The notes beneath the pieces were generated by a model that ran no database searches, was not told where the DNA came from, and saw only the letters and a list, made by a program, of their open reading frames with translations. A stretch of DNA of 64,000 bases from Hamiltosporidium tvaerminnensis FI-OER-3-3. Taxonomy: Eukaryota; Fungi; Microsporidia. A program made the translations under genes and the position numbers. Where the stretch lies: positions 558,001-622,000 of the forward strand of contig CM061246.1 of the NCBI GenBank assembly GCA_022605425.2. The letters are read 5' to 3'. Shown piece by piece: positions 6,001 to 44,390 of the stretch (position 1 is the stretch's first letter; each line of letters begins with the position of its first letter).

Positions 6001-6072
6001 TGGTTGTAGTTTTCCTAAAAGTATGTGGTCACATGTTTTTGTTATGGGTTTTTTTGATATGAAGTAGTTCAT
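1..6072 (-). CDS. CPSF1: Cleavage and polyadenylation specificity factor 160 kDa subunit (CPSF160/Cft1); repeat-expanded, split by five apparent frameshifts, 3' end outside the window
   Basis: N-terminal IIILFKNAKISTLTYD...TTSLRYFE matches the CPSF160 LLLSFKDAKLSVVEYD...LSLHYFE segment. Manual translation of 750->240 gives GEDNICKGRLIILKIKSVIPQINKPLT...KGPVICC...CIGTKVFVY...AIAFHDMHV...KNYVVVGDVCRGVSMFYYQSRP, the CPSF_A C-terminal propeller. Joining ORFs 3736-6072, 3410-3640, 3028-3432, 1425-3251, 1112-1609 and the frame open to position 1 needs 1-nt indels near 3783, 3420, 3045, 1438 and 1241. Confidence 0.9.
1340..1700. repeat. 30-nt in-frame tandem repeats within CPSF160 (QQGVNHISNN and LEGVSDIDSG units)
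   Basis: Repeated ttaacaccctgttg(g/t)ttatt(a/g)gatatatgg and ctaacaccctctaatccactatctatatca units. Confidence 0.95.
3238..3470. repeat. 30-nt tandem repeats within CPSF160 (LEGVSNRNNE / YKGVSNRIDD)
   Basis: Repeated attactaacaccc(tct/tta)aat units with 30-nt periodicity. Confidence 0.9.
4348..4750. repeat. 39-nt tandem repeats within CPSF160 (DKGVLDSSNDGTY / GKGVLDREMDGGL)
   Basis: About ten 13-codon units, each containing ctaacacccctttatc/acc. Confidence 0.9.
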
Positions 6073-12019: not shown

Positions 12020-14356
12020 ATGTTATCCTTTACAAACGATAAAAATAGTTATTTGAAAAAATATACCAGACAACTTGATTTGGGTTGTAAATTGAACAAG
12101 TGCTGTCGAATATTTTGTAAAAGAAATATGTCAAGATCTTGTATGCAAAATATAGGAAAAATGTTGGCCAAATATGGATCGGTTTTTTATTGTGAAAATA
12201 TATGTCTTATTCTTCAGGGTAACGAGTTTTCCAATGATTATATTTCAGTTGGCTGTAGACCATTGGATTTCTTTTTTTATTTAACGCATATTTTGTTTGA
12301 TGAAGACTTTATAAAAGTAAAAAATAAAGGATGTACATCTCAAAAGTCGGAAAATTGTGATACATTTATAAATAAGAAATTAAATCATGAATTTTGCGAA
12401 TATTTTAACAGTGCTAAATTTGGAGAAGAAGATATTGTATTAATCGAAGGACTATTATATTTGCTACTCAAAAAATATGAATTTACATTAGAACAGACAC
12501 TCGGCTTAGTGATAATTAGAATATTTAATGTCGTTTCTCGTCATTATACGCTTAAAAATGTATATGTTCAGCTTTTTACAAATACATTTCTCAATATACA
12601 AAGATTATCAAAAGAAATATCGAAAGATGATGGTAATGAATGCTGTTGTTTTGAGGATATGAATAAAGATTCTATATCATCAAATATTTCAAATGAATCA
12701 AACATTCATTCCAATGAAACATTAAAATCGGTTGCAGAAAAGGAATCAATTAATACGATATCAAGCGTAACAAAAATTTCTGCTTGTAAATCCCCAGATA
12801 ATTATAATAGCAAACTAGCAAATATAAACTTAAAAAATATATTAAGCGCTGAGAGTAATCATACAAGTAGGTATTCTTTGAATAGCGCATATACATCAAA
12901 TGATACAGGATTACTCCGAGAATGTATATTTAAATCGAAAATAACAAAAAAGGATTTCATAAATCTTGTAAATTCTGTTTCCCTGTGTATAAACTCAATG
13001 GCACATGTAAATATTAGAGAATCTGCGTGTTTAGAAAATCTTTTCAATATTTTTAATATTCTCTATACAATTAATGATCAAGAAAAAATTTTAAACTATA
13101 AAAAATTTTATTCCGAAGAATATTGTAAATCCCAAAATTTCAAGGAAGAATTTAGATCTTATAAAGCAAATTTTAAATCGATGTTAAAATATACCTTTAT
13201 ACTTCCATTGAGAATGAAAGCAGAATTCATTAAATCAGAAAACAGTGATATGATGAAGTCGTGTCTGCAAGATATGTTTTTTAGAGCACTTTTTGAAGGC
13301 GAAACAAAACCGTATTTGTTTATTACGGTCGGAAGATCTACAATATATAGAGATACAATGAATATTTTAAAGAATTTAGATGATAGTGAAATGAAAAAAC
13401 AACTAAAAATAACTTTTGACAACGAAGAAGGTGTGGATTCTGGAGGAATCCGAAAAGAGTATTTTCAATTGTTAAGTGAGGAAATAACAAATGATCACGG
13501 TCTATTTAAAATCAAAAATAATTATTTATGGTTTAAAATCACAGATAGAGCTTCTGATAATCTTAGGGAATATGAAACGATAGGAAAACTAATCGGGATA
13601 GCCTTGTATAACGATGTAGTGTTAAATATACCTTTCCCAAGTGTGTTTTTCAAAAAACTGTTGTCTAAAAGAACGAATACATCTGATTTACAGCAGATAT
13701 GTCCAGATATTTTTCAATCACTTTATAATCTTAAAAAATGTCAAAAGGAAGAATTAAAAGAATTAGAACAAACTTTCGAAATAGCTTATTCCACAAATGA
13801 TATTGAAATAACACATTTTCTTGTGGAAAATGGAAATAAAGTAATGGTAGATTGTGAAAATGTCAACGAATTTATCGAAAAATATGCAGATTTTATCCTG
13901 AATGAATCTATATCAGCTGAATTTGAATCTCTTAAGAAGGGATTTTTTTCAATTGTGAAACATTCAACCGTGAGTTATCTTCATTCAAAAGAATTAGAAA
14001 AAATTATAGTAGGCACAACATTTATAGATGTTGAAGCAATTCATAAACATGCTTTAAATACAGGTTTTGATGAAAATTCATCGACTCTACAAAATTTTTG
14101 GGAAATATTTACCGAATTTGATTCTGAGAATCGAAAAAAGTTGCTTCAATTTATAACCGGAAATGATAGAATACCGGTCTCTGGGCCAGAATCACTAAAA
14201 TTAGTTATAATGAAAAATGGTTGTGATACCGATCGGCTTCCTTCATCACAAACATGTTTTAATACACTTTTGTTGCCGGAATATTCTTCCAAAGAAAAAT
14301 TAAAAAGCAAATTATTGAGTGCTATTCACATGACCAAAGGCTTCTTTTTATTATAA
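12020..14356 (+). CDS. HECT-domain E3 ubiquitin ligase, UBE3A/E6AP-like, with an N-terminal AZUL-like zinc finger
   Basis: KKQLKITFDNEEGVDSGGIRKEYF, GKLIGIALYN, KKLLQFITGNDRIP and catalytic DRLPSSQTCFNTLLLPEYSSKEKLK. N-terminal YTRQLDLGCKLNKCCRIFC resembles AZUL (Y..QL..GC....C...FC). CCC at 12005-12007; AATAAA directly after the stop. Confidence 0.93.
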   Translation: MLSFTNDKNSYLKKYTRQLDLGCKLNKCCRIFCKRNMSRSCMQNIGKMLAKYGSVFYCENICLILQGNEFSNDYISVGCRPLDFFFYLTHILFDEDFIKVKNKGCTSQKSENCDTFINKKLNHEFCEYFNSAKFGEEDIVLIEGLLYLLLKKYEFTLEQTLGLVIIRIFNVVSRHYTLKNVYVQLFTNTFLNIQRLSKEISKDDGNECCCFEDMNKDSISSNISNESNIHSNETLKSVAEKESINTISSVTKISACKSPDNYNSKLANINLKNILSAESNHTSRYSLNSAYTSNDTGLLRECIFKSKITKKDFINLVNSVSLCINSMAHVNIRESACLENLFNIFNILYTINDQEKILNYKKFYSEEYCKSQNFKEEFRSYKANFKSMLKYTFILPLRMKAEFIKSENSDMMKSCLQDMFFRALFEGETKPYLFITVGRSTIYRDTMNILKNLDDSEMKKQLKITFDNEEGVDSGGIRKEYFQLLSEEITNDHGLFKIKNNYLWFKITDRASDNLREYETIGKLIGIALYNDVVLNIPFPSVFFKKLLSKRTNTSDLQQICPDIFQSLYNLKKCQKEELKELEQTFEIAYSTNDIEITHFLVENGNKVMVDCENVNEFIEKYADFILNESISAEFESLKKGFFSIVKHSTVSYLHSKELEKIIVGTTFIDVEAIHKHALNTGFDENSSTLQNFWEIFTEFDSENRKKLLQFITGNDRIPVSGPESLKLVIMKNGCDTDRLPSSQTCFNTLLLPEYSSKEKLKSKLLSAIHMTKGFFLL

Positions 14357-24224: not shown

Positions 24225-25526
24225 CAACAGGTTGATTCTGCCTGACGAGGATGCTTGTCTCTGGGATTAAGCCATGCAAGTCTGGTGAAGCGAAAGTGGA
24301 ACTGCGAACGGCTCAGTAGAACGGTGATTATTTAATCGTGTAGGAAGGATAACCGCGGGAAACTGTGGCTAATAACACGAGTAAGACGCCGACCCATCAG
24401 TTTTATCGTACGGTAAGGGCGTACGATGGCTTTAACGGGTACGGGGGATCAGGGTTTGATTCCGGAGAGGGAGCCTGAGAAACGGCTACCAGGTCTAAGG
24501 ACAGCAGCAGGCGCGAAACTTGCCCAATTGGAGAGAGGCAGTTATGAGACGTATATTTTGTAACCGGGGTAGAATACCGGTGATTGACTGGAGGGCAAGT
24601 CTGGTGCCAGCAGCCGCGGTAATTCCAGCTCCAGGAGTGTCATAGTGCATTGCTGCATTTAAAAGGTCCGTAGTCAGTGTTGACAGGGATGCTAGAAGAC
24701 ACTTTCTTCATGGAGTGTATTGGCATTCTAGGTTAGCATGTAGGAGCGGAAGAGGGCGACTGTATTGCGTAGCGAGAGGTGAAAGTTGACGACCTACGTA
24801 GGACAAACCGAAGCGAAAGCTGTCGTCCAGTACGTTTCCGGTGATCAAGGACGTAAGCCGGAGGAGCAAAGGTGATTAGAGACCCCTGTAGTTCCGGCCG
24901 TAAACTATGCCAACTGGGTGTTACGTAGTGGTACCCACGAGAAATCAAGTATATGGGCTATGGGGATAGTACGATCGCAAGATTGAAACTTGAAGAAATT
25001 GACGGAAGGACACCACCAGGAGTGGAGTGTGCGGCTTAATTTGACTCAACGCGGGACAACTTACCAGGGCCAGTTGTATGACGAATCTTTGATGAGTACG
25101 ACTAAGTGGTGCATGGCCGTTCACAACATGTGAGGTGACTTTTAGGTTTATTGCTGTAATGTGTGAGACCCTCAGCTACGGCGACTGGGGACTATAAGTT
25201 TCAGGAAGGAGGGGGCTATAACAGGTCTGTGATGCCCTTAGATGTTCTGGGCTGCTCGCGCACTACAATGTTATTTCTAGGTATATTGTAAAGATAAAGG
25301 ATAACTCGGTTGGGATTGCGTTCTGTAATGGACGCATGAACCAGGAATTCCTAGTAGTCGCGTGTCACTAACGGGCGACGACTGCGTCCCTGTTCTTTGT
25401 ACACACCGCCCGTCGTTATCTAAGATGGTGCTATGTTCGAAGAGGGTTTTCCTTCTGAGGACGTAGGATTAGATTGGATACAAGTCGTAACAAGGTTGCT
25501 GTAGGAGAACCTGCAGCAGGATCAGT
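24225..25526 (+). rRNA. Small-subunit (16S-like) rRNA, microsporidian
   Basis: Starts caacaggttgattctgcctgac; universal gtgccagcagccgcggtaattccagctcc, aaacttgaagaaattgacggaagg, tgtacacaccgcccgtc, aagtcgtaacaaggt; ends gaacctgcagcaggatca. Reduced length of ~1.3 kb. Confidence 0.98.
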
Positions 25527-25559
25527 GCTAGTACTTTTATTGTGTAGTTTTTTCATATT
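25527..25559 (+). other. Internal transcribed spacer (~30 nt)
   Basis: Short T-rich segment between the SSU 3' end and the 5.8S-like ggatcacttggctc motif; boundaries approximate. Confidence 0.8.
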
Positions 25560-27233
25560 AAACTCATACAAGGGATCACTTGGCTCCGTATCCGAGGAAG
25601 GCCGGAATAGTTTCCGAGAACTAAGGCCGAACGGCATTGTAAATGCCTGACTACCCCCTGGACTTAAGCATATTATTAAGGGGAGGAACAAAAACTAACT
25701 AGGATTTCTGTAGTAGCGGCGAGCGAACAAGAAATAGCCCCGAATGTAAGCCTCCGGGCATTGTTAAGATCGTCGTAACGAATTACCGGGACAGGTAAGC
25801 CATAGAGGGTGATAGCCCCGTAGTGACGAGTAATGGGCAGAGTAGGGTTGCTTGGTAATGCAGCCTGAAGAGGTGGTGGGTTCCATCTAAGGCTAAATAT
25901 GAGCGGAGACCGATAGCGTAATAGTACAGCGATGGAAAGGTGAAAAGCTAAAAAGTGCAAAGACGTGAAATTGTATTGAGTATCCTGATAACAGGACCCG
26001 TCTTGAAACACGGACCAAGGAGTGCATCTGCATAGCAAGTTAAAGGGGGGTTTCCTTTAAGCGTAGCGAAAGCAGATATAGCTGTTCGGATGCGACCCGA
26101 AGGGCTGTGAACTACACCTGGCCAGGTTGAAGCCATTCGAAAAGATGGTGGAGGACCTAAACTTGTTCTGACGCGCAAATCGATGGTTTGAGCTGGGTGT
26201 AGGGGCGAAAGACCAATCGAACAGCCGGGTAGCTGGTTCCCATCGAAATGTCTCTCAGGACAGCAGACACAAGTTACTTAGTATTATGCGGTAGAGGAAC
26301 GGCGGGATGAAAGGGGAGCAATCTCCACATACCGACGAACTGCGAACGTGTACGTGTTATTCTTGTACTAAAGAATAGCGATTATATATGTGTCTAGTGG
26401 GCGCGTTCTGGTAAGCAGGACGTGCGAAGAGGGATCAACCTGACGTACTGATAAGGGGCCTAATCTGGTTTTTCTTAAGGCCGTAGATGAATTGTGACAG
26501 TAGGGCGGTGGCCATGGAGGTTGGCATCCGGTAAGAAACGTGTTGCAACGTACCTACCGAATTCATGTGCGCCGAAAATGGACGGTACAAGGCCAGACCC
26601 GATGCAGTACTTATAGGTAGATGGGCGTGGTGTATGTGCAGAAGGTTTACCGTGAGGTAAAGTGGAGCATACACTAGTGCTGATCTTGGTGGTAGTAGTT
26701 ACAATTCGTGTGTGAATCGCGAAGGCTTCAGGAGAAGGGTTCTTCTAAGATTTCATAAGGAGAAGGTTAGCCGGTCCTGAGATCTCGACAGGGAATCGGG
26801 TTGATATTCCCGAGCCATCTAGGTATTTGGCAACAGTAAATATGGTGTTTACGTCTTAGGCACGACAACAAGGAGGTACCCATTCCTTGTAGCAGTACTG
26901 TATGTAGCGTGTTGTACAGAGCAATACAGGCATATGCGATTGTCTTAGCTGGGATCCGTGAAAAAATACCTTTATGACCTAGATGACCGTACCGACCGCA
27001 GCAGGGCTCCGTACGGTGTATACCGGAAGCGATAGGACAAACGTTAGTTAGGGAATTCGGCAAATTAGATCCGTAACCTCGGGAAAAGGATTAGCTCTAA
27101 GGAATTAGAACTTTTAGTTACGGGGAATCCGACTGTTTAATAAAAACATAGCTTTGTGGTGGTGTAGTACGTGGACACAAAGTGAATTCTGCCCAGTGCC
27201 CAGCTGTTAAGACAGGTCGGGCTGTATACGCAG

Positions 27234-27287
<54 letters not shown>

Positions 27288-27384
27288 CCTAATTAGTGAC
27301 GCGCACGAAAGGAGCAACGAGATTCCCACTGTCCCGACTAACAACCTGCGAACCCACGAGCCAAGGGAACGGTCTTGGCTATGC

Positions 27385-27421
<37 letters not shown>

Positions 27422-27697
27422 GTGACGCCGGGGTCTTGTGCAGCTGTAGCAAGGTGGGGCAACTGAAAGACCACTAGCTGTGCAAGCGACCCGTATTTGT
27501 CAGATGGGGAGTTTGACTGGGGCGGTACATCTGCTAGACTACAACGCAGATGGCCTAAGGGTGGCTAACTTCGGAGAGAAACCGAGGGTGTAGTCCAAGG
27601 GCAAAAGCCACCCTGACGTATTACTACACGGTAATACGAGGGGAAACCCAGGCCTAGCGATCCCATTGCTTACAGAGCATCTAGCAATGGGTGACGT

Positions 27698-27729
<32 letters not shown>

Positions 27730-27833
27730 AGCCGAGCGACCATAGCGACGCTGCTTTTTGATTCTTCGATGTCGGCTCTTCCTATCATGGTGCAGCAGAA
27801 GGCACCTAGTGTTGGATTGTTCACCCACTAACA

Positions 27834-27871
<38 letters not shown>

Positions 27872-28175
27872 TAGTTTTACACTACTGCTACGGTACTAAG
27901 GGAGCAGATGCTAGTACGAAAGGAACGAATCTGCAGGACCTCTTGTCGTGCCTATATCTGGTAAGGTACGGGCTAAGCAACGTCCTGGTACGGAAGAGCT
28001 GAAGGCCTCTAAGCTTCAACGTGGCCCTACTGTACTATCTAGCATGAAGACGACGTGCTTGGTGCTGCAGCTGTAATCCACAAGATCGCGAGTGGATGAG
28101 GCTAGCAAGCACTCATGACGAGAGATGATCACCACCTCCACGTGGTTCTCGTTGGGTAACGCCAAGAGTGATCAA
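25560..28175 (+). rRNA. Large-subunit rRNA with fused 5.8S-like 5' domain
   Basis: ggatcacttggctc (5.8S-like), gacttaagcatat, acccgtcttgaaacacggaccaagg, gtaactatgactctcttaaggtagccaaatgcctcgtc, PTC cagggataactggct...gatgtcggctcttcctatcat, sarcin-ricin loop tagtacgaaaggaac. Ends approximate. Confidence 0.96.
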
Positions 28176-28466
28176 ACAAAAAAATGTAAAGAATTTAAAA
28201 CTAAAAAAAAAGTAAACAAAAAAATGATTTCAAAAAAAATTCAAATCGGATAAATACAACGAAAGAAACATTTTAGCACCTTACCAAAAAGGATCTAAGC
28301 AAAAAAACGCAAATGCTTTTTTAACATTAGGCATGTGGCATTTAAATAAATTCCACTAATTATCACTTATAAAAAGACACATACCAGATATGTTTTAAAA
28401 TATCACTTTTTAAAGATTTGAGTCTTTATCTATTCTGGATATCTCATTACCAATTTGATTTTTAAA

Positions 28467-28482
28467 TATATTTATCCCTTTA
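28467..28482 (+). repeat. Target-site duplication of LINE copy 1, left copy (right copy 33923-33938)
   Basis: tatatttatcccttta immediately precedes the ORF1 ATG and recurs immediately after the (TTTA)n tail. Confidence 0.85.
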
Positions 28483-30135
28483 ATGGGTAAAAGAAAAATA
28501 TCGGGAGCGGTTGAAAATCGCAAAAAATCAAAATGTGAGAATACGGGTGTGAAGAGTAGGAATTTCGACGACTTTGTTTCCAGCTCATCGAGGACTAGCC
28601 ACCCTCGAGTTGTGAGCCCAATCGACTGTTTTTTTTCGGCATCTTCGAAACAGAAGGAGTGTGCGGCAGCCACGCACAAGGAGAGTAAAAAGTGTACAGA
28701 TAATAGGGATGTAAGGAGTTTTTTTGGGACAAGCATGCCAAAGCACACACAGGATGTGCCGCTGACCAGCCAGCGAAGTTTCCCGGAGGAGAAAGAGGCA
28801 CAGACTTTGTCTGTTCTTTATGCACTTGCTTCTGAGAAAATAACACTCCTTGAAAAAAGAGTGGAAAAATTAGAAGAAGAGGAAAAGAGATATAAAGAAT
28901 CTCTTATGTTGGCAAAGACCAACTCGATTGCTTTAAAGGTACTCTTTAAAGAAGTTGAGAAGCTACGTAAAGTAGCTAAAAGGTCGCGTAGGTGCCGTAC
29001 TCACAAGTGCATGATAACGGCAGTAGCACCTGCTTCCTCGGTTAGGCTAGAGGCAGGAGCCAGAGACCCTCAGGCTGATCCAGCAGCCAGCGAGTTAGTC
29101 TGCAACGCTGCAGAACTAACAGAGAAACCACCCGAGCAGAATTTGGTGGTAAATGAGGCGAAATCTCAGTCTTTCGGGCCAACCTTGGCCGCACGATCTG
29201 CAAAGGTAAAAGCTCGGTCTTTGGATAAACAGGTCGTGTTAAGGACTGGCAGTTCTACTGATCTGACTGCAAATGCTGGTGACCCTCTTGCCGCTGGAGT
29301 CTGCCCAGCGGAAGTGCAGATCTGCAACGCAGCAGAATCTCAAGGCTTACAAATTCAACGTGCAATGAATGTAAGCCATCAAGGGGCGAGGCCTGTTGAA
29401 TGTGGTACGGGCAATACCACACTGCCTCCGATAGCAACTCCTCGTTCTATCGAAAAAAAGTTACCTGAAAAGACTTCCGTAAGTGCTTCAGGAAAAGGTC
29501 TTATGGATAAAAAAAAGGAATTATCCAAGAGTAAAGCAACTGGTAACCCAGCCAGTAAACCGAGAGCCGTCAAATTGCGGACTGCCAAAAAGCCTTCCTT
29601 CGATCGTACTAAGGCACCTTCGAAGCAGAGTAGAGGGAAACTTAACTTAAACAGAGCACAGTGTGAGGATGTTGTGCAAGGCAAATCACCATTTGTCTTG
29701 AATAGGTTTGTGCTTCTTTACTTAGTTGGAGTTAAAGTAAACAAACCCGCTTATTTAAGAGCAGTCTTAGAGAACGGGGGCGTTAAATCTTACTACGTCA
29801 AGCACGTAGGCTTCACTAAGGAAGGCCTGTTAGAGTTGCTTGTGAATGCTAACAGTGTGGATAAAGTTAAAGCCATTTTTACAGGCTTTAAAGATGTTAA
29901 GACGTTTGATAACTATCTTAACAGAGGCAGTCTCGAAGAGATTGGAGAGCGGTTATCTGACCTTAAGCGCAGACTCTCATGGGTCGAGCGATTTAAAGAT
30001 AACCCGCCGGTTAGGAGGTTCCTTAGCATTCTGAAGCATACTTCAGCTCAGAATGCCTCTCAAGAAGCCTCGAAAATCTTCTACGGACTAGAAGATATGG
30101 TACTTGAGGAGCCAAAGAGCTCCTCTAGCCTATAG
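28483..30135 (+). CDS. LINE ORF1 protein (coiled coil, basic disordered linker, putative RRM-like C-terminal domain)
   Basis: 550-aa ORF preceding ORF2; heptad-like ITLLEKRVEKLEEEEKRYKESL; beta-alpha-beta-beta-alpha pattern in FVLLYLVGV...LLELLV...VKAIF; no CCHC knuckles. Confidence 0.85.
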   Translation: MGKRKISGAVENRKKSKCENTGVKSRNFDDFVSSSSRTSHPRVVSPIDCFFSASSKQKECAAATHKESKKCTDNRDVRSFFGTSMPKHTQDVPLTSQRSFPEEKEAQTLSVLYALASEKITLLEKRVEKLEEEEKRYKESLMLAKTNSIALKVLFKEVEKLRKVAKRSRRCRTHKCMITAVAPASSVRLEAGARDPQADPAASELVCNAAELTEKPPEQNLVVNEAKSQSFGPTLAARSAKVKARSLDKQVVLRTGSSTDLTANAGDPLAAGVCPAEVQICNAAESQGLQIQRAMNVSHQGARPVECGTGNTTLPPIATPRSIEKKLPEKTSVSASGKGLMDKKKELSKSKATGNPASKPRAVKLRTAKKPSFDRTKAPSKQSRGKLNLNRAQCEDVVQGKSPFVLNRFVLLYLVGVKVNKPAYLRAVLENGGVKSYYVKHVGFTKEGLLELLVNANSVDKVKAIFTGFKDVKTFDNYLNRGSLEEIGERLSDLKRRLSWVERFKDNPPVRRFLSILKHTSAQNASQEASKIFYGLEDMVLEEPKSSSSL

Positions 30136-33100
30136 TCAGGACTGTCGGAACTGTTGACACCTGCCAACAGATAAAGCCGTGCAAAGCAGGTCCCGCGGTA
30201 TACTCTGTCTGGGGGGTACCGCATAGGCATCGTAGTGTTTTTGCTGAAACACTAGAGGCGAGAGGTTCCAAAGGTACGTATGTCAAGCGAGTTATACAGC
30301 GAGATGGACGTAGACGACTTGATGTGACTGTTGAGAGTGGGATAGACCCGGAAACAGTGCAAGCTGTGAGTAGGAAACATCTTGGGTACTGCAAAACCCA
30401 TACACTAGGGAGAAAAAAGTCTGTCAGAATTTGCACGGAATCGTATAGTAATCTTAGATTACTTACGCTAAATGTAAATTCCTTTGGATCAAAACGAGAG
30501 GAGGTTCTAATGCTGACCGGTAAACTCCACCCAGACATTCTATGTCTCCAAGAGACATTACGCTACACAGGGAATTCTCGGAACGTTATTCCGGGATACG
30601 AGGTGATTGAAAGCTTTGCCAACAAGGAGGAAAAAGATGGTAGAGGACTGATTTTAGCTGTGCGTCGTAAGTTAGATCTTACGCTATCTTCAGTTGAAGT
30701 ACATCCTAACTTCTTGGCTGGCATTGTGTGTGGCAAAAAAGCGTCTGGTGGCTGGTTTAAATTGCTTGTTGTTAACGTGTACATTCCTCCGAAATGTTCA
30801 CTATACGGCAACAGAGCGGAAACGCTCGAAGCTCTGGGATCTTTTCTTGTTAGCGAAAACAAGAAAAACGGTTTGGATGATATTCTAGTCATGGGCGATT
30901 GGAATATGACTCCAGAAGAGGCTGCTAGGTTCCTGGCTGTCAACAACCTCTATTGCACGAATAAATGGTTATTCGAAGCACCGCGAGCTACACGTGCAGC
31001 AGCACACGGTGCCAATAGATGCATTGACTACTGCCTGTTTCTGAAAAGAGAGTGGGCGGAGGTAGTTAAAGTGCACAGGAAATGGGATATATCGGATCAC
31101 CTTCCTGTAACTGTTGACGTTAGGGTGGACACGCTCACACGAGCTGTACGCAAGAAAAAGCTCTTCTTACGCAAGTTTGTTGAGCGGTCACTTGCCGAAA
31201 AGCTTATAAGCTGTCCGACCTGGAACAGTTTCGGTCACAATACGGATCATGGGATTTATGTGGCAGAAACTGTTAAAGAAGTAGCAAAAAAGTTGGGTCT
31301 TGAAGGTACTTTTTCAGATGGAAATAGTTTATTTTTGCCTCGGAAGCTTAAAAAGACTATTGACGATAGACGGAGAGTTGCTTTCGAAATGAGAGCCGGC
31401 CGAGCTCATCCGAACGCCTATGCTGTCCTCAAACGAAAGTGCGAGGAAATGAAGCTTCTATATAGGCGGCAGCTGAGAATAAAGTGGGCACAAAAAGGTA
31501 TTGCGGCGGCAACAAACCGGTGCATGAGAGATGTGTGGCAGTGGACCAGAAGGTCTGCTGGAATGCCCAAATTCTCGGCTGCCAATCGCACGGTTTTGGA
31601 TGAAAAAGGCCAAATTGCTTCGGATGAGCAGACAGTGTTGCAGGTCTGGTACAACCACTTTCGTTCCTTAGCAACAATGAATAATGAGTTACATAGCAAA
31701 GACACTCAATCTGATTGTCTTATCGAGGATAACAACGCTCATTATAATGATTTGATTGCTTGGCAAGAGGTTATTTCAGCGCTGCACGAGTCAGCAAACA
31801 ACAAAGCATGTGGTTTAGATGAGGTACCAGTAGAAGCGTACAAAGCTCTACTAATGGATACTCATGGCGTAAGTCTGATGGCACAGCACATTTTACATGT
31901 GCTGAACGAGGCCTGGACAAATAGAATACCTGACAGCTGGAGAGTGTCAGTCATAGTACCGGTACCGAAGAAAGGTGATTTACGAAAGCCTGGAAACTAC
32001 CGTGGAATTTGTCTGATAAACACTCTTCTTAAACTGCTGTGTAAGGTTGTGGAACGCCGAATGCGTTTGTATGCTGAGAATAATAGCCTCTTGTGCCGGG
32101 AACAAGCTGGTTTTCGTACTCGAGAGGAATGTGTTGCTCAGGTGGCAACTCTTTTAGAAATTCAAAGGAGAAGATTTATTCGAGGTAGAGAGACTGTTTG
32201 CCTATTTATCGATTTCGAAAAGGCTTACGATAGAGTTCCTCATGATCTAATCCTTTTGAAACTAAAAGAGCAAGGCTTTTCTGGAAAACTCCTAAGATTC
32301 CTTAGAGATCTGTACACTGATCTACAGGTTGGTGTCAAAGTAGGCGATAAAACAACAAGCCTATTCCCATATAATATCGGCCTCCGCCAAGGCTGTCCGC
32401 TATCACCTCTATTATTCGATCTTTATATCGATGACATTTTTAGAGGTGTTAATGGTATAGCATGCGAGGGTCTTAATTATAGGGTTCCGGGTCTGTTGTT
32501 TGCCGATGACACTGTCCTGCTCGGTGATGATGTGGCTGCCGTACAACTCAGTATGGATAAAGTGATGAGGTGGTGTGAGACCTGGGGAATGCGTATTAAT
32601 ATAGATAAGTGTGGGTTGTTACTTCCCCCGGTTCTTACAGTTAACGTAATGATAGGTAAATCAGCAGTCCTGTTTGTCAAACCTAAAAATACCTAGGCAT
32701 TGTGTTGGCCCGCACGTTTTCTCTAAAAGAATTGATTCTTGGGAGAAAAAAGGCTGTGTTTCCGGTCCGAAAAAATGCTATGCCATTCCTCTGCAGATCA
32801 GAAGTTCCGCTTTATTTTAAACTTCTGATTATAAAAGCATGCATTATACCCATTGTAATGTATGGGAGCGAATTGTGGGGAATGAGCAAGGTCAGAATAG
32901 TATCTGTAGGTTGCGGCGTTACACGCTCTTTGGCAGCAGCTTTTGGATGTCGAGAGAATTTTGCCCAGCTGGCAGCTTTCAGAGAGTGTGACATCCAGCC
33001 TTTATATGAAAAGGCAGCTATGTCACGTGTAAGAGGCTTTTTGAAATGGCAAGAAAGCAGAACGATCATCCGGGACTTGCTCAATGGTAAGTTTACAGCG

Positions 33101-33715
33101 AGGAAGAGGACGTGGGTTACTCAAACCCGAATCTGGATGAAAGCTTATACTGGAAGTCCTTTATCGGGTTTGAGTAACAAAAAGAATAGTCTCTTTATTA
33201 AAGAGGCTATTGTTAAAAGACAAGACCGAGCCGATAAGTCAGTTATAGGTGGCTTACGTAGGCTGTGGGGTCTTAATAGTGGTTATAAGTGGATCTACGC
33301 AGAGCTAAACAACAGGGTGTTAGCTAGCAGTATTAGGATGCTGCGTAGATTCAGAATAGGACTGGTTAAATTTAGTCCGCAACTGGCAGCTTTAGGAAGA
33401 TTACCGAATAGGTATAGGGAACGCTGTCCATGTTGCGAGGAACCAGTCCGAGAAACTTTGTGCCACCTAGTGTTCATGTGTAAGAGGTGGCAAGTGGAGC
33501 GGTTGATGTTTACAGCTCAGGTTACGAGAAAAGTTGTAAAATGTTTGAAATCTTCTGATGCTGTAGGGAATTTAGGATTAAAGGTGTTAGGAGTGCTCTT
33601 GGAAGGGGAGTGGCAAGCTGCTGGGCTGCAGCAAAATCGAGTTGGCATGGCTTTGGTGAAGTTTATTGGAGCAGTAATGCCTCAAAGAAGACAGATCCTT
33701 AATGGTTTGCAATAA
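30129..33715 (+). CDS. LINE ORF2: AP endonuclease, reverse transcriptase and C-terminal CCHC finger; one frameshift near 32675-32690
   Basis: APE motifs TLNVNS, ILCLQET, VVNVYIP, VMGDWN, CIDY, ISDHLPV; RT motifs QAGFR, FIDFEKAYDRV, GLRQGCPLSPLLF, LLFADD; CPCC...ETLCHLVFMC. The frame is open from 30129. Copy 3 reads through the frameshifted region as VETYRYLGI. Confidence 0.95.
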
Positions 33716-33778
33716 GACCAGGTTGTGTTAACTTAAAATGTGTATGTGTGGGATAAAGGGAGACGTGTGACCTTCTAG

Positions 33779-33827
33779 AACCGAAGTCCGATTGCGGATA
33801 TGGTGGCTATACATAGCCGGGTCGGTT
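33779..33827 (+). promoter_or_regulatory. Three-way-junction RNA structure in the LINE 3' UTR
   Basis: P1 aaccga/tcggtt, P2 tccg-attg-cgga, P3 ggcta-taca-tagcc; compensatory changes in the relative at 34098-34146. Confidence 0.75.
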
Positions 33828-34052
33828 TATAAGGAATTTTGTGTGTTGTAGATTTGGCTGATCTTAAGGAAAATAAACCGAATTTTATTTATTTATTTTA
33901 TTTATTTATTTATTTATTTATTTATATTTATCCCTTTATATATAAGTAAACTATTTTCAAAAGACAGCATCGAGATTTTTAATTGAGAAAAAATCAGTAT
34001 TTTTATTTATCATTTCTTTTCCTTTGCTTCAAAGTTTTCAAAATTTTTAAAT

Positions 34053-34280
34053 CTAAGACTTGTACTGTTATAGTTTTCTTACCTGTATATATTCTAGAAC
34101 CGAAGTCTAAATGTGGATATGGTGGCTGTACACAGCCGGGTCGGTTTTATTGGATTTTTGTTTTTGAGTGTGGTTCATGGTATGGAAACGAATAGCTTAG
34201 TTTCCCTTTAAAAACAATACAACGAGTAGTGCTGAAAACTTTTTATCAATAAAGCCGAATTTTATTTATTTATTTAAAAA
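34053..34280 (+). mobile_element. Short element matching the 3' UTR of a related LINE (extreme 5' truncation or SINE-like partner)
   Basis: Shares the ~55-nt structured core and the aataaa(g)ccgaattttatttatttattta terminus with copy 1 but differs in between; possible degenerate TSD aaaattt(t)taaat at 34040-34052 and 34281-34292. Duplicate at about 61840-62068 on the minus strand. Confidence 0.7.
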
Positions 34281-37200
34281 AAAATTTTAAATATATACAA
34301 TCACAGAATTACTGTATTCATGTTTAGAATATAAAAATGACCAAAGATCACAAAGTTTTAATCATTTGAATCATAAATTCAAAAAAAAGAATATATTTGT
34401 CAATCTTTGATAATATATAAATAAGAAAAATAATAAATATATTCACATACATTGCTTTAAAAAATAATGTATGTATACATTATAGAAAGAATTTCTTAAC
34501 TAGCATCTCTTTGTTCAAATAAATGATAGATATATGCGCAAAAATACTTTAAAGGATATATAAATAATTTTTTAAAAAAAAACTTTATGAGATGAATAAA
34601 CCAATGTACTAGTGGCTTTATATATTTGACATTAAATAAAATTTGAGATTTTTCTATAGCGTTATAATAATATATTTGCTAAGTTTTGAATTATGAATCT
34701 AATTACATAGAAATGAAACAGAAAAATATAGAGGCATATTTGCCAATAATAATTTACTCAAAAAATAATGGTAGATTTAATGATTCAAATGTTTAAAATA
34801 GATAGACAAAGCTTATTTATAAAATTCTAAAATTTAAATTTTTGGATCATAAATCAGTATCAAGCATAAATTTCTGTTTGGTAATGATTAAAAAAATTTT
34901 TTGTTAACCATTGCAAAATTGGATTTTCAAGTTATAACTTAACGGATCTAGTATTAAGAAAATTTAGAACAACAAATATAATTTTTTCAGTCAACCAAAC
35001 AAATATATTGAAATAAAAGAATTAATTAAGGGAAATTTTTGTATTATATAAAAATAATAGATTCTTGGCACTACAGAGTTACCAAATTACATTAAAAAGA
35101 AATATATACTAGAAATATAAGATTAATTCAATAAATTGAACAAGAATAATAAAAATATAAAGTAGATAATAAGCAAAAGTATTAACTTCTAATGATTGAA
35201 GTTTATGTTATAATGGTTCAAAAGTTCTATTTTTATCAAAAAAATTAAATTTGAATATGAATTTTAAGTTAGCAAAATACTAAAAATTATGAAGATGTAC
35301 AATAATTGGATGGTTATACCCCTCTGGCAATAGTAAAAAACCTATTGGATTATCTTTAGAAAAATATAGCAAGCAGTCAACATGATTTGTCACAAGGAAT
35401 GCATATTTTTCTAAAATATAATGGCTTTTAAATTAATTTTAGAATAATATATTTTATAATGTTATATTATATCATTTAAAACTCTTAAAAATCATTATAT
35501 TTATATGAATGTTATGGTAATTAATGCCAAAATGATTAAATAACATTAAGAGATATTAAAATTGGTTTTAAAATAATTATCATATAGCAATATGACGATA
35601 AATTAATCGAAAAATATTGTTTTAGTTAATTAACGAAAAAATTCATAAATCTAAACGAATAAAAAAAGACTTTACAACATATATATTTATTAAATCGCGT
35701 CACGGTATATGAACAGCAATTGTTTAAATCGTTTTACAACAGCTAACAACTTATTAAGTAAACCACAATCTTTTATCCCGTAAAAATTGATTTAAGTCGT
35801 TTAATGAATGTTTCTTAAAACAGAAATTTTTCCAATCGAAATAGTCGTTAAACCATACCCAACCTTCCTCTTTTTTTAACCTCGATGAGCTTTATTAATG
35901 TTAAGTCTGCAATATGGTGCAAGAATAAAATAAGACACACAAATTTTAATCTATATCTTTAATTTTTATGTACTATTCATACTAAAACTTGAATAAAACT
36001 AGTTATAATTACAATTTTTAAAAAAAATAAAAATCCACATGCATAGGGAATATGAAGTACAAGCTAAATAAACCGTAAATATATACAAACCAGAATTATA
36101 TAAAATATTTCAATTTAAATATATTAGAAATAAACGTCTTTAACTATAGAATGAATGTTACTTTTCTTAAATTTACCATTAGCTGAAGTATTTAAATAAT
36201 AGGTTTTGGAAATCATAATGGAATCGTTTATTCCATAAAAAAAATATAGAAAACTGCAATATTTAATTATAAACTGATTCGTAAAATTATGTTTTTGGTA
36301 ATTTATATTAGTTTATATTTAACTTCCATTGAAGCTTACAATTAAATGACTATGATGTATAGAACGCTATCAAAAAAAAGACAGAAGAATGTAAGTATAT
36401 TATAAAACTAAATTTCTTGTTTCGGTTTGAATAATAATAATTATAAAAAATTTAAGAAGAGGTTAGTTAATGTCTAATTATTTTATATCCAAGCGAAAAA
36501 TTTTGTTTCATTCAAAGTAATAAATATGGAAACAATTTTTTCAGAATAAAATAAAGGTATAAAAAATTTAAAACAATAAAGAATTAGAAGAACTTAACAA
36601 TTTATTAAAATTTATCAAAATATTACATGGTCCAACGAAAAAATTTTATTTCGTTAATATATAATAATTTTTAACTTCAACTAGCAGTAAAGAAGTAAAT
36701 CACTGACTGAGATTTTATAAATTAGAATCGAGTTTTCTTCTTTATAAAGTAAAAATAATATATATTTTATCTTTAATTTAAAAAGTTTTTGAAGTCTAAA
36801 TTTCCTTTAGAATACCATTTTACGAATATTTAATACATATTTCAAACATAGCATAAATAAAAAATAACAAAAAATCATACAGATGACTTCTATGCGCCTT
36901 GTATTATTCGGATATCAGATCGAAAAAGACGGATATTCCGAGATATTAAGAACAAAAAACAATTTAAAATATACATCTTTAAAATTAATAATTTTATAAA
37001 CAAAAAGAAATATTTTAAATTGATTTTCGTATATTAAGACTTCTAAGACCGTTAATAAGTAATTAAATATTGTAAAATTCATCATGGTGTAATTTATGTT
37101 GTTCTAACGTAATGGTATACATAAATATCACAATTTATAAGCTTTAAAGCCGTATTTCAGGATGAGAATATTACTTTACCCTTCTCAAATATTTAAAAAT

Positions 37201-39271
37201 GAACATTTTAATCAAAGCAAAACAACTGTCTAGCCTATGATTAAGCCATAAGATGGAATATTTTTAGTTTAATATAACTACATTCAAACTTTATTTATGT
37301 TACATTCTTTATATTCACTATATATTCGAAATTTTTTTATAAAATTAAAATATAAGAGTAATAAAAAGATAGCGTTATTTTATCTATAAATTACATAGAT
37401 ATCATCAAAATATATAACAACAAAATATCTTATAAAAAAAAGCTTGAAGTAGAAATTGAAGATGCTGAATAGTCAGATAGAAAAATTCTTGTAGATAATA
37501 ATCCTACTTTTACTTATATACGAAATATACAATCGTGTATATATTATACTACATTTTAATAAAATATCCGAAAACGTTTTTAATTTGGTATATTTGGCAG
37601 TTGTTTATATAAAGGTTATTCGATCTTATTACAAAATCTTTCTAATAAAATTAATAATGTTGTGAGATTATAAAGTAATTTTTGGTTTTAAACATGTTAG
37701 TTTCTATGTGCATTTAAAAATAATAAGTCGACCGAGTTTCTTTATATAGTACTTGTCATCGGAACGAGCAGATCTGATTTGTAAAAAAGGCTTTTAACCA
37801 GATATATTCTCATGAGTGTTAGTTGCACAAGTAATTAAATCTAACATTGTTAAATTAAAAAAGAACACGTGTGATACCTACTCTATTATGCTATTATCTC
37901 AAAATTTAATCCCTTCATGTTCGATATAATTCTTTCATAGAACAAGATCAAAATATTTAATTTATATTGTGAGCAGTTTCGCATTAGTCAACCAATATCA
38001 TGTGTTATATCATTTTTAAGCATTAGAATTTATAATATAACCAGAGGGCTTTATAATTTTCTTACATTACATGGATTTTTAGTTAATTTCTTGCTTGGCT
38101 TTTCTAAAGTTCCAAAAAAGAAATATACTATTAATACGTTAAAGTAAAAAAGATTTTTCTGCTCTATTCATTTTTTTGGTCTTTTATGTGATATTTTAAG
38201 CGAGACCTATGATAGAATAACCATTTTGAAACAGCGTCCAGGAATATTCTTTAACTGAATGCCTTCTTAAATAGCCCCAAAGATAAGTTTATAGTAAACG
38301 TGAGGATGGTGTAAAACGTATCATAAACGCCTTTTTATTGTATTATTTTTCTCTGCATAAAGTTTTTCTGTAATACCAGAATTTTTTTGATTTTCAACTT
38401 CAAAGAAATTCAGATTATTTTAAAGATATATGATTCACTAAGATAATGTAGGTCAGCGTTAGTAACTATTATCTCATGCAAATAATATGTATATTATTAG
38501 ATATAATATAAATCAATTACATCGTTTTGTAATTTAAAAAATGGAACTCTCTTATATCCTTAATGAGATTCAGAAAACTAAAAGGATTTTCTTTAAAAAA
38601 TATATTTTTCTTTAGATTTTTGTTAATCCTAAAACCAGTTTAAATAACCCAGATAATTTAAAAATTTGTTTTTTTAATGGTGTATATGAAAGATTTATAT
38701 CTTACAGTCCTAAATGTTTTTTATAATTTTGACTAGTTCTAATCTTTTCGAAACGCAGTAATTGTTAAAACAGATTTGAAAAACATTTTTACGACTAACA
38801 TTTTTCTTTAAATACGTTTTTTACTGCAAAAATATAATAGATTTATATTTTAAATTCTTGCATTTTATACAATCATCCTTAGGGTTATATATCTGTTAAA
38901 TGTTTATTATATTTGTAAGTAATATATTTATTAGATGGAATATAAATACAAGAATAGAAAGAAAAGCACCAAGCACTCAATAAAGTGAGCAAAGAAATGT
39001 ACAAAAAAATTTAAGCAAAATTTAGATGGGAAATATAGATAGGCATACTTGATATTTTTCTCCATATATTCTGTATTTAGATATAATAAACTAAAAATAT
39101 TTTTAGTATAATAAGAATAAAAAAGAAAAATGCAAGTATACGATCAGAAGAAATAATAAAATAAGAAAATTTTAAAATTTTCTTTTGAAAATAAATCCGG
39201 GAGTAAAAATATATTTATAAATCGAGAAATAGAAACCAAATGTATGACGACTATTGTGTTGTAAGGCGCCC

Positions 39272-42200
39272 ATGGGCAAAAGAAAAATATCGGGAGCGGT
39301 TGAAAATCGCAAAAAATCAAGATGTGAGAATACGGGTGTGAAGAGTAGGAATTTCGACACTTTGTTTCCAGCTCATCGAGGACTAGCCACCCTCGAGTTG
39401 TGAGCCCAATCGACTGTTTTTTTCGGCGTCTTCGAAACAGGAGGAGTGTGCGGCAGCCACGCACAAGGAGAGTAAAAAGTGTACAGATAATAGGAATGTA
39501 AAGAGTTTTTTTTGGGACAAGCATGCCAAAGCACACACGGGATGTGCCGCTGACCAGCCAGCGAAGTTTCCCGGAGGAGAAAGAGGCACAGACTTTGTCT
39601 GTTCTTCATGCATTGCTTCTAAGAAAATAACACTCCTTGAAAAAAGAGTGGAAAAATTAGAAGAAGAGGAAAAGAGATATAAAAAAACTCTTATGTTGGC
39701 AAAGACCAACTCGATTGCTTTAGAGGTACACTTTAAAGAAATTGAGAAGCTACGTAAAGTACCTAAAAGGTCGCGTAGGTGCCGTACTCACAAGTGCGTG
39801 ATAACGGCAGTAGCACCTGTTTCCTCGGTTAGGCTAAAGGCAGGAGCCAGAGACCCTCAGGCTGATCCAGCAGTCAGTGAGTTAGTCTGCAACGCTGCAG
39901 AACTAATAGAGAAACCACTCGAGCAGAATTTGGTGGTAAATGAGGCGAAATCTCAGTCTTTCGGGCCAACTTTGTCCGCACGATATGCAATGGCTAAAGC
40001 TCGGTCTTTGGATAAACAGATAGTGTTACGGACTGACAGTTCTACTGATCTGACTGCAAATGCTGTTGACTCTCTTGCTGTTGGAGTCTGCCCAGCGGAA
40101 GTGCTGATCTGCATAGCAGCAGAATCTCAAAACTTACAGATCGAACGTGCAATGAATGTAAGTCATCAAGGGGCGAGGCTCGTTGAATGTGGTACGGGCA
40201 ATACCACACTGCCTCCGATAGCAACTCCTCGTTCTATCGAAAAAAAGTTACCTGAAAAGACATCCGTAAGTGCTTCAGGAAAAGGTCATAAGGATAATAA
40301 AAAGGAATTATCCAAGAGCAAAGCAACTGGTAACCCAGCCAGTAAACCGAGAGCCGTCAAATTGCAGACTGCTAAAAAGCCTTCATTCGATCGTACTAAG
40401 GCACCTTCGAAGCAGAGTAGAGGGAAAATTAACCTAAACAGAGCACAGTTTGAGGATGTTGTGCAAGGCAAATCACCATTTGTCTTGAATAGGTTTGTGC
40501 TTCTTTACTTAGATGGAGTTAAAGTGAAAAAACCCGCTTAATTAAGAGCCGTCTTAGAGAACGGGGGGTTTAAATCTTACTACGTAAAGCATGTAGGCTT
40601 CACTAAGGAAGGCCTGTTAGAGTTGCTTGTTAATGCTAACAGTATGGACAAGGTTAAAGCCATTTTTACAGAATTTTAAAATGTTAAGACTTTTGATAAC
40701 TATCTTAACAGAGGCAGTCTCGAAGAGATTGGAGAGCGGTTATCTGACCTTAAGCGCAGACTCTCATGGGTCGAGCGATTTGAAGATAACCCGCCGGTTA
40801 GGAGGTTCCTTAGCATTCTGAAGCATATTTCGGCTGAGAATGCCTCTCAAGAAGCCTCGAAAATCTTCTACGGACTAGAAGATGTGGTACTTGAGGAGCC
40901 AAAGAGCTTCTCTAGCCTATAGTCAGGACTGTCTGAACTGTTGACACCTGCCAACAGATAAAGCCGGGCAAAGCAAGCCCTGCGGTATACTCTGTGTGGG
41001 GTGTACCGCATAGGCATCGTAGTGTTTTTGCTGAAACACTAGAGGCGAGAGGTTCCAAAGGTACGTCTGTCAAGCGAGTTATCAAGCGAGATAGACGTAG
41101 ACGACTTGATGTGACTGTTGAGAGTGGGATAGACCCGGAAACAGTGTAAGCTGTGAGTAGGAAACATCTTGGGTACTGCAAAACCCATACACTAGGGAGA
41201 AAAAAGTCTGTCAGAATTTGCACGGAATCGTATGGTAATCTTAGATTACTTACGCTAAATGTAAATTCCTTTGGATCAAAACGAGAGGAGGTTCTAATGC
41301 TAACCGGTAAACTCCACCCAGACATTTTATGTCTCCAAGAGACATTACGCTACACAGGGAGTTCTCGGAACGTTATTCCGGGATACGAGGTGATTGAAAG
41401 CTTTGCAAACAAGGAGGAAAAAGATGGTAGAGGACTGGTTTTAGCTGTGCGTTGTAAGTTAGATCTTACGCTATCGTCAGTTGAAGTACATCCTAACTTC
41501 TTGGCTGGCAGTGTTTGTGGCAAAAAAGCGTCTGGTGGCTGGTTTAAATTGCTTGTTGTTAACGTGTACATTCCTCCGAAATGTTCACTATACGGCAACA
41601 GAGCGGAAACGCTCGAAGCTCTAGGATCTTTTCTTGTTAGCGAAAACAAGAAAAACGGTTTGGATGATATTCTAGTCATAGGCGATTGGAATATGACTCC
41701 AGAAGAGGCTGCTAGGTTCCTGGCTGTCAACAACCTCTATTGCACGAATAAATGGTTATTCGAAGCACCGCGAGCTACACGTGCAGCAGCACTCGGTGCC
41801 AATAGATGCATTGACTACTGCCTGTTTCTGAAAAGAGAGTGGGCGGAGGTAGTTAAAGTGCACAGGAAATGGGATATATCGGATCACCTTCCTGTAACTG
41901 TTGACGTTAGGGTGGATACGCTCACACGAGCTGTACGCAAGAAAAAGCTCTTCTTACGCAAGTTTGTTGAGCGGTCACTTGCCGAAAAGCTTATAAGCTG
42001 TCCGACCTGGAACAGTTTCGGTCACACCCCTAATCATAAGATTATGTGGCAAAAACTGTTAAAGAAGAGAAAAAAGCTAGGTCTTTAAGGTACTTTTTCA
42101 GATGAAATAGTTTTTTTTGCCTCGGAAGCTTAAAAAAACTATTGACGATAGACGGAGAGTTGCTTTCGAAATGAAAACTGGCCGAGCTTATCCGAATGCC

Positions 42201-44390
42201 TAAGCTGACCTCAAACGAAAGTGCGAGGAAATGAAGCGTCTATATAGGCGGCAGCTGAGAATAAAGTGGGCACGAAAAGGTATTGTGGCGGCAACAAACC
42301 GCTGCATGAGAGACGTGTGGCAGTGGACCAGGAGGTCTGCTGGAATGCCCAAATTCTCGGCTGCCAATCGCACGGTTTGGATGAAAAAGGCCAAATTGCT
42401 TCGGATGAGCAGACAGTGTTGCAGGTCTGGTACACATCCATCGTTCCTTAGCAACAATGAATCATGAGTTACAGAGCAAAGACACTCAATCCGAGTGTCT
42501 TATCGAGGATAACAACGCTCATTATAATGATCTGATTGCTTGGCAAGAGGTTATTTCAGCGCTGCACGAGTCAGCAAACAACAAAGCATGTGGTTTAGAT
42601 GAGGTACCAGTAGAAGCGTACAAAGCTCTACTAATGGATACTCATGGCGTAAGTCTGATGGCACAGCACATTTCACATGTGCTGAACGAGGCCTGGACAA
42701 ATAGAATACCTGACAGCTGGAGAGTGTCAGTCATAGTACCGGTACCGAAGAAAGGTGATTTACGAAAGCCTGGAAACTACCGTGGAATTTGTCTGATAAA
42801 CAATCTTCTTAAACTGCTGTGTAAGGTTGTGGAACGCCGAATGCGTTTGTATGCTGAGAATAATAGCCTCTTGTGCCGGGAACAAGCTGGTTTTCGTACT
42901 CGAGAGGAATGTGTTGCTCAGGTGGCAACTCTTTTAGAAATTCAAAGGAGAAGATTTATTCGAGGTAGAGAGACTCTTTGCCTATTTATCGATTTTGAAA
43001 AGGCTTACGATAGAGTTCCTCATGATCTAATCCTTTTGAAACTAAAAGAGCAAGGCTTTTCTGGAAAACTCCTAAGATTCCTTAAAGATCTGTACACTGA
43101 TCTACAGGTTGGTGTCAAAGTAGGCGATAAAACAACGAGCCTATTCCCATATAATATCGGTCTCCGCCAAGGCTGTCCGCTATCACCTCTGTTATTCGAT
43201 CTCTATATCGATGACATCTTTAGAGGTGTTAATGGTATAGTATGCGAGGGTCTTAATTATAGGTTTCCGGGTCTGTTGTTTGCCGATGACATGTCCTGTT
43301 CGTTGAATTTGTGACTGCCGTACAACTCAGTACGGATAAAGTGATGAGGTGGTGTGAGACCTGAGGAATGCGTATTAATATAGATAAGTGTGGGTTGTTA
43401 CTTCCCCCGGTTCTTACAGTTAACGTAATGATAGGTAAATCAGCAGTCCTGTTTGTCAAACCTAAAAATACCTAGGCATTGTGTTGGCCCGCACGTTTTC
43501 TCTAAAAGAATTGATTCTTGGGAGAAAAAAGGCTGTGTTTCCGGTCCGGAAAAATGCCATGCCATTCCTCGGTAGGTCAGAGTTCCGCTTTACTTTAAAG
43601 TTCTGATCATAAAGCATGCATTATACCAATCGTAATGCATGGGAGCGAATTGTGGGGAATGAGCAAGGTCAGAATAGTAATTGTAGTTTGCGGCGTTACA
43701 CGTTCTTTGGCAGCAGCTTTTATATGTCGAGAGAATTTTGCTGCCTTGGCAGCATTCAGAGAGTGTGACATCCAGCCTTTATATGAAAAAGCAGCTATGT
43801 CACGTGTAAGAGGCTTCTTGAAATGACAAGAAAGCAGAACGATCATACGGGACTTGCTAAATGGTAAGTTTACAGCGAGAAAGAGAACGTGAGTTACTCA
43901 AACCCGAATCTGGATGAAAGCTTATACTGGAAGTCTTTTATCGGGTTTGAGTAACAAAAGTAGTGGCCTTCTAATCAAAGAGGATATTGTTAAAAGGCAA
44001 GGCCGAGCTGATAAGTCAGTTATAAGTGGCTTACGTAGGCTTTTTGGTCTTAATAGTGGGTATAAGTGGATCTACGCAGAACTAAATAACAGGGTGTTAG
44101 CTAGCAGTATTAAGATGCTGCGTAATTTAGAATAGGACTGGTGAAATTTAGTCCGAAACTGGAAGCTTTAAGAAGATTACCGAATAAGTATAGGGAACGC
44201 TGTCCATGTTGCGAGGAACCAGGCTGAGAAATTTAAGCCATTTAGTGTTTGTGTTAAGAGCGCAAGTGGAGCGATGGATGTTCAAAGATCAGATTACAAG
44301 AAAAATTGTAACATGTTTAAAATCTTCTGATACTGTAGGGAATTCAAGGCATCAAGATACTCTTGGAAGGGAAATGGCAAGCTGCCGCAG
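39272..44390 (+). mobile_element. Decayed LINE copy 2 (ORF1 and ORF2 pseudogenised, 3' UTR and tail missing)
   Basis: Colinear with 28483-33625 from the ATG onward; many frameshifts and stops (fragments 39648-40541, 41153-42088, 42457-43314). Confidence 0.95.

Follow-up and report, generated by a model that had tools for sequence, protein, structure and literature searches.

The LINE copy at this locus raises the question of how an element is transcribed when its first nucleotide is also the first of its own start codon. The persistence of LINEs is attributed to a promoter that is itself transcribed as part of the 5′ UTR. Microsporidian transcripts are near-leaderless, with the core promoter upstream of them, and this arrangement is a real problem for any retroelement. 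The window analysed here was a stretch of 64,000 nucleotides (C1:558001–622000) of Hamiltosporidium tvaerminnensis, a Daphnia parasite, and the genome examined comprised 21.6 Mb in 17 contigs. The initial annotation of the window had described a LINE copy, copy 1, that lacked a 5′ UTR and seemed to borrow a CCC promoter motif of the host from its insertion site. The mechanism proposed there was only partly supported, and the borrowing of a host promoter motif is unproven.

Insertion limits and rDNA setting of copy 1

Copy 1 and its parts were located as follows.

28467–28482, forward strand: 5′ TSD copy, tatatttatcccttta, with CCC at 28476–28478, 4 nt before the ATG
28483–33922, forward strand: copy 1 of the LINE, a real target-primed insertion
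28483–30135, forward strand: ORF1 of copy 1, intact and 550 aa long; the element starts at its first base
30324–33715, forward strand: ORF2 of copy 1, APE endonuclease and reverse transcriptase, in a broken frame
33716–33922, forward strand: 3′ UTR and (ATTT)n tail of copy 1
33923–33938, forward strand: 3′ TSD copy, 16 bp

The insertion of copy 1, an APE-type LINE, is genuine, recent, and target-primed, and its first base is the A in the ATG of ORF1. The 16-bp TSD was perfect, and the last base of its 5′ copy directly preceded this ATG. The 5′ junction read ...aaaTATATTTATCCCTTTA/ATGGGT (a slash marks each junction), in which the CCC was followed by a 4-nt spacer and the ATG at 28483, and the 3′ junction read (ATTT)n/TATATTTATCCCTTTA/tatataag. 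Eight paralogous rDNA flanks at four other loci (L051–L058) were uninterrupted, with the sequence ...aaatacatttcttccttta/tataagc, and the 5′ and 3′ flanks of copy 1 were contiguous in those eight arms, overlapping by 16 bp. Because these flanks are empty sites, the insertion limits of copy 1 are exact, and the exact TSD together with the eight empty sites confirmed the earlier description of a copy without a 5′ UTR. In principle, the terminal 1–4 nt of the TSD (ttta) may come from the element as microhomology, which would place the 5′ end of copy 1 up to 4 nt before the ATG and otherwise at the ATG itself.

The product of ORF1 had no match in Pfam or PDB sequence searches. Its nearest database relatives were proteins of H. 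tvaerminnensis and H. magnivora, and the exact ORF1 of copy 1 was not on record in the database search. ORF2 contained an N-terminal APE-type endonuclease (Pfam Exo_endo_phos, 2.2e-11, residues 47–259) and a reverse transcriptase domain (Pfam RVT_1, 5.9e-33), and its best PDB match was human L1 ORF2p (2.4e-27). The ORF2 frame was broken by a 1-bp deletion near 32678. This deletion sits in a tract of ~140 bp (32630–32765) where, in the alignment, copy 1 was equal to the decayed copy 2 and differed from copy 3 at ~20 positions; gene conversion appears to have introduced this tract and thereby inactivated copy 1. The TSD, the empty sites, the simple-repeat tail, and the 5′-truncated copies of the family are all hallmarks of APE-type LINEs.

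The insertion was located close to a ribosomal RNA gene unit.

24225–28118, forward strand: rDNA unit from Rfam, with SSU at 24225–25527 and LSU at 25631–28118

The two genes were matched by SSU_rRNA_microsporidia (1205 bits) and LSU_rRNA_eukarya (1728 bits). Copy 1 lay 365 bp downstream of the LSU gene, in the same orientation as the rRNA. The LSU 3′ flank was present in ten copies in the assembly, which belonged to five loci. Each locus was a large palindrome, in which two inverted rDNA units were separated by 27–40 kb and an old LINE copy occupied the central part. The paired LSU 3′ flanks were positioned as follows.

C1:585900/625334
C1:1206109/1233631
C10:345514/372974
C14:888452/914795
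C17:607682/637243

Four of the eight young independent insertions (copy 1, copy 3, L022, and L025) were found within ~1 kb downstream of an LSU gene, as was an older related fragment, and all of these were in the rRNA orientation. The copies bearing ORF1 were all (7/7) located inside the five rDNA palindromes. The regional bias toward rDNA was strong, and read-through transcription would be a live alternative source of expression. The Rfam search of 28300–29100 gave no ribozyme match at E ≤ 10, a result that divergent ribozymes could escape, and the folding of the first 240 nt of copy 1 was not unusual (z = +1.3).

Copy 2 and the sequence upstream of its ATG

The second 5′ junction of the family was provided by copy 2.

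39246–39271, forward strand: GC-rich 26 nt, gacgactattgtgttgtaaggcgccc, directly before the copy 2 ATG and ending in CCC
39272–44385, forward strand: copy 2, old and decayed, without the last ~300 nt of the LINE

When copy 1 was compared with copy 2, the homology began at the ATG (28483 and 39272, respectively) and none was found further upstream, in agreement with the initial annotation. The first 400 nt of the LINE occurred seven times in the genome; position 1 was present in six of these occurrences, and copy 3 started from position 309. Four further loci, on C14, C1, C10, and C17, had the upstream sequence of copy 2, including the 26-mer. The five copy 2-type loci were 90–96% identical and colinear over 13–15 kb or more, from ~5 kb upstream of the ATG to past the LINE, and the LINE copies at all five had one internal endpoint at ~5139. 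The same locus also occurred in H. magnivora and in an older H. tvaerminnensis assembly. Judged from their colinearity and shared endpoint, the five loci are segmental duplicates of one ancient insertion. Since they represent one insertion, the family has only two independent full-length 5′ junctions. Other assemblies added no new independent 5′ junctions, as the contigs of H. magnivora and of the older H. tvaerminnensis assembly were copy 2-type or cut at their ends. The initial annotation had regarded a common upstream sequence in other copies as a sign that copy 1 was a chance truncation. Such a sequence was indeed shared by four more loci, but the comparison is invalid for segmental duplicates of one insertion.

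A TSD search for the copy 2-type insertion gave chance-level 9–10-mers only. The insertion has no TSD or empty site because its 3′ end (LINE ~5140–5440) is missing in all five paralogs. An empty-site search with the flanks of copy 2 revealed no LINE-free paralog; the upstream flank occurred only at the five loci, and the downstream flank was an unrelated 212-bp dispersed repeat. This repeat, at 44478–44689 just past copy 2, had more than 35 copies genome-wide. The C14 paralog was without it, and the repeat was therefore inserted after the segmental duplication.

In the 26 nt before the copy 2 ATG, the G+C content was 14/26. No other of the 1261 windows that cover the 1286 nt preceding copy 2 was as rich, and 1.2% of 26-mers in the AT-rich background of the window reached this value. 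The G+C content was 22% in the flank and 44% in the element, so that the 26-mer was unlike the flank (p about 0.004–0.012) and like the element. A genome search with up to three mismatches found the 26-mer only at the five copy 2-type loci, and none of its 11-mers recurred in the rDNA, the LINE body, or elsewhere in the window. Comparison with the LINE body, the rDNA, and the retrieved loci gave no significant match, so that template switching onto a known RNA is not supported as its source. From its composition, the 26-mer is probably an element-borne leader of about this length, with CCC immediately ahead of the ATG. The view that the upstream CCC of copy 2 is host flank is not supported, as the 26-mer is locally extreme in G+C and unique to copy 2-type loci. 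The initial annotation had noted that the upstream bases of copy 2 could be the real 5′ UTR, and the unique GC-rich 26-mer is most simply the leader of the element.

The surroundings of the copy 2-type ATG varied little. Among the five paralogs, no variable site was found from −136 to +27 (39136–39298; paralogs L002–L005), and variation was low up to +400, compared with ~10 variable columns per 100 elsewhere. The copies in the window and on C17 and C10 were 100% identical over 631 nt. Either gene conversion or constraint would account for this invariance. A 126-codon antisense ORF over the copy 2 junction (39144–39524) was rejected as a gene because its frame was not conserved among the paralogs.

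Independent insertions and CCC motifs near start codons

A genome search with the 3′-terminal LINE sequence revealed further copies. The young independent insertions had their 5′ ends at LINE positions 1, 309, 4586, 5190, 5291, 5292, 5315, and 5332, and seven of the eight were thus 5′-truncated. Five short copies had clean TSDs of 12–20 bp at varied AT-rich targets. One of the truncated copies, copy 3, ran off the window.

62191–64000, reverse strand: 3′ part of copy 3, running off the window, with its 5′ end at LINE position 309

Copy 3 was located at the same site as copy 1, in the other palindrome arm. It had a 13-bp TSD, tccctttatatat, with the 3′ copy at 62178–62190, and an (ATTTT)nA6 tail. 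Because its TSD, tail, and 5′ end differ from those of copy 1, the two insertions are independent. The 5′ junction of copy 3 was tatAT/G (L050, C1:625329–625334), in which the AT of the target and the G of the LINE form an ATG. This ATG lay 7 nt after the CCC of the target and was in frame with ORF1 residues 104–550, open for 448 codons. An in-frame ATG junction of this kind would arise by chance in about 2–3% of cases, as an estimate.

Paired hits of both arms were seen twice. Copies 1 and 3, in opposite arms of a single rDNA palindrome, were inserted within 8 bp of each other (28467–28487 and 62178–62198). Another such pair, L025 and L022 (C1:1206964 and C1:1232214), shared one nick site in two arms and had (ATTT)n and (ATTTT)n tails. 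Among the short copies, a start at LINE position 5291/5292 was found in at least three independent 3′-UTR-only copies of this family and an older related one (window 34092–34290; L029, L030, L044, L047, and L048), and GGG motifs were present 12–25 nt upstream of this position. The discrete 5′ end suggests a subgenomic RNA or a SINE-like partner as a possible source of these copies.

The CCC motif was compared between the LINE junctions and the host genes of the window.

3736–6072, reverse strand: host ORF for a 778-aa protein without a name, CCC 13 nt before the ATG
7926–10325, reverse strand: host ORF for an ERCC4 nuclease, CCC 6 nt before the ATG
12020–14356, forward strand: host ORF for a HECT ligase, CCC 12 nt before the ATG

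The motif thus preceded the start codon in 3/3 host ORFs of the window. It directly abutted the ATG in copy 2, with the 4-nt spacer described above in copy 1, and these observations of the initial annotation were reproduced throughout. 5′ RACE in E. cuniculi has shown that leaders are shorter than 7 nt and that a CCC-like motif lies immediately ahead of the start codon (PMC2803860). Copies 1 and 2 both had CCC within 15 nt of the ATG, as do microsporidian start regions, and 2.9% of intergenic positions had CCC in the preceding 15 nt as background.

At the target of copy 1 (28474–28478), both arms of the locus had ATCCC, and the eight arms of the other four loci (L051–L058) had CTTCC. The CCC was specific to the only rDNA locus that was hit at that site.

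Besides the site shared by copies 1 and 3, none of the six independent target sites had CCC within 15 nt of the 5′ junction. The motif thus appears not to belong to the target choice, and the endonuclease preference for CCC that had been offered in the initial annotation is not supported. From the 2.9% background, the chance of one CCC site among seven was estimated at about 19%.

Origin of the 5′ end of copy 1

The reading preferred here, tentatively and short of calling it probable, is that copy 1 may have been copied from an AUG-start RNA of a master element that had its own CCC leader. The master would have had the form of copy 2, with ~26 nt of its own leader and CCC directly before the ATG. 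In microsporidia, transcripts begin a few nucleotides past a CCC motif. Transcription of the master would occur as in host genes, with the start just downstream of the element's own CCC, and the RNA would begin at the AUG. A retrocopy of such an RNA would begin where copy 1 begins and would not contain the promoter. The family would not be intrinsically leaderless, and copy 1 would be a promoterless daughter, in whose TSD the CCC is probably fortuitous. The start of the transcript at or near the AUG, which the initial annotation had proposed, is the most economical explanation for copy 1; we infer this start, as we do the element-borne leader and the role of CCC in setting the start in H. tvaerminnensis.

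Two coincidences were weighed. For an element entirely without a leader, a 26-mer as GC-rich as that at copy 2 would arise by coincidence at roughly 0.4–1.2%. If it had a leader and was randomly truncated to the first base of the ATG, the coincidence would be 1 in 30 in the best case and 1 in ~5,000 in the worst. Both would be expected if a master of the copy 2 form were transcribed, like host genes, from just after its CCC. The truncation points of the young insertions were varied, so that a chance truncation exactly at the ATG would be rare, and the discrete 5′ end at 5291/5292 of the short copies indicates that DNA 5′ ends in this family can mirror defined RNA ends. Against the preferred reading, a second, upstream start or a read-through RNA is needed to pass the leader on. 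The reading also relies on two independent full 5′ ends, and the invariant copy 2-type junction could reflect gene conversion.

Chance 5′ truncation comes next in probability, and we consider it rather unlikely. The LINE would have a short 5′ UTR of at least 26 nt, as in copy 2, and copy 1 would have stopped at the first base of the ATG, the CCC of the TSD and the preserved ORF1 both being coincidences. Truncation was the rule among the young insertions, the leader of copy 2 looks element-borne, and one CCC site among seven is unsurprising. However, this account requires one exact base out of ~5,470, or ~1 in 30 if the stop is confined to the leader, at a junction without microhomology favouring that base. 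A family that has no 5′ UTR, with host DNA supplying both upstream CCC motifs and with activity only beside CCC through endonuclease preference or selection, appears unlikely; in a variant by 5′ transduction, the leader of copy 2 would have been brought from a lost donor locus. It is consistent with CCC within 4 nt of the ATG at both independent full-length junctions (2/2, against ~2% expected within 10 nt), with copy 3 in the same CCC-bearing site and its in-frame ATG, and with the ATCCC target in the window against CTTCC in the eight paralogous arms. These points are opposed by the last 26 nt upstream of copy 2, which are compositionally unlike the flank, by the reduction of five seemingly supporting loci to a single insertion, and by the six other target sites without CCC. 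Selection for CCC is not expected to be visible in fossil copies, which may never have been active.

Expression that depends on rDNA is the least probable of the four, and we regard it as very doubtful. The LINE would target the spacer downstream of LSU in the sense orientation and be read through as R2 is, and RNA processing would produce the UTR-less 5′ end. The sense-oriented insertions downstream of LSU and the confinement of all ORF1-bearing copies to the palindromes argue for it, and R2, which lacks its own promoter, is considered to be transcribed together with the rRNA repeat (PMC2881922). On the other side, neither an HDV-like nor another ribozyme match was obtained, the fold of the 5′ region was ordinary, the rRNA genes themselves are not interrupted by the insertions, the endonuclease is APE-type and not restriction-like, and short copies are also found far from rDNA. 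The four explanations are not fully exclusive. A further reading by promoter capture, also improbable in our estimate, holds that the RNA would be started at the AUG from a non-transcribed host-type motif and that every copy would be promoterless. Copies would survive behind a fortuitous CCC, present at about 3% of AT-rich sites, or downstream of rDNA on the sense strand, and the minimal promoters of microsporidia would make such a cycle workable.

In most characterised LINEs, the promoter is internal to the 5′ UTR; the promoterless R2 is the known exception (PMC2881922). The present LINE resembles L1, Drosophila jockey, and the I factor in its ORF1 and its ORF2 with APE endonuclease and reverse transcriptase, in TSDs of 12–20 bp, in frequent 5′ truncation, and in a simple-repeat 3′ tail. 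Unlike in these elements, a 5′ UTR is absent from copy 1 and no longer than a few tens of nucleotides in the older lineage, and the sole recognisable signal is a host-type CCC upstream of the ATG rather than a downstream internal promoter. The association with rDNA, the sense orientation, and the lack of an evident promoter of its own are shared with R2 and R1. In contrast to these, the insertions lie in the spacer 365–1000 bp downstream of the LSU gene and not at a fixed site inside LSU, the endonuclease is an N-terminal APE type and not a restriction-like domain C-terminal to the reverse transcriptase, the Rfam search gave no match to a 5′ ribozyme, and short copies are dispersed. When compared with the starts of microsporidian host genes (Peyretaillade et al. 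2009, PMC2803860), the LINE is similar in its CCC at 0–4 nt (6–13 nt in the host ORFs) and its AT-rich upstream sequence, and differs in that the candidate motif precedes ORF1 of a mobile element. According to work cited in PMC4202319, an LTR retrotransposon of Anncaliia algerae has a microsporidian signal in its putative promoter.

If copy 1 was merely truncated, the finding is ordinary. If its RNA starts at the AUG, the locus would show how a LINE copes with the promoter architecture of microsporidia: most daughters would be dead on arrival, and the family would depend on its own upstream motif, on chance motifs at the target, or on rDNA read-through. The 5′ ends of such copies would also serve as a natural reporter for the start of CCC-directed transcription.
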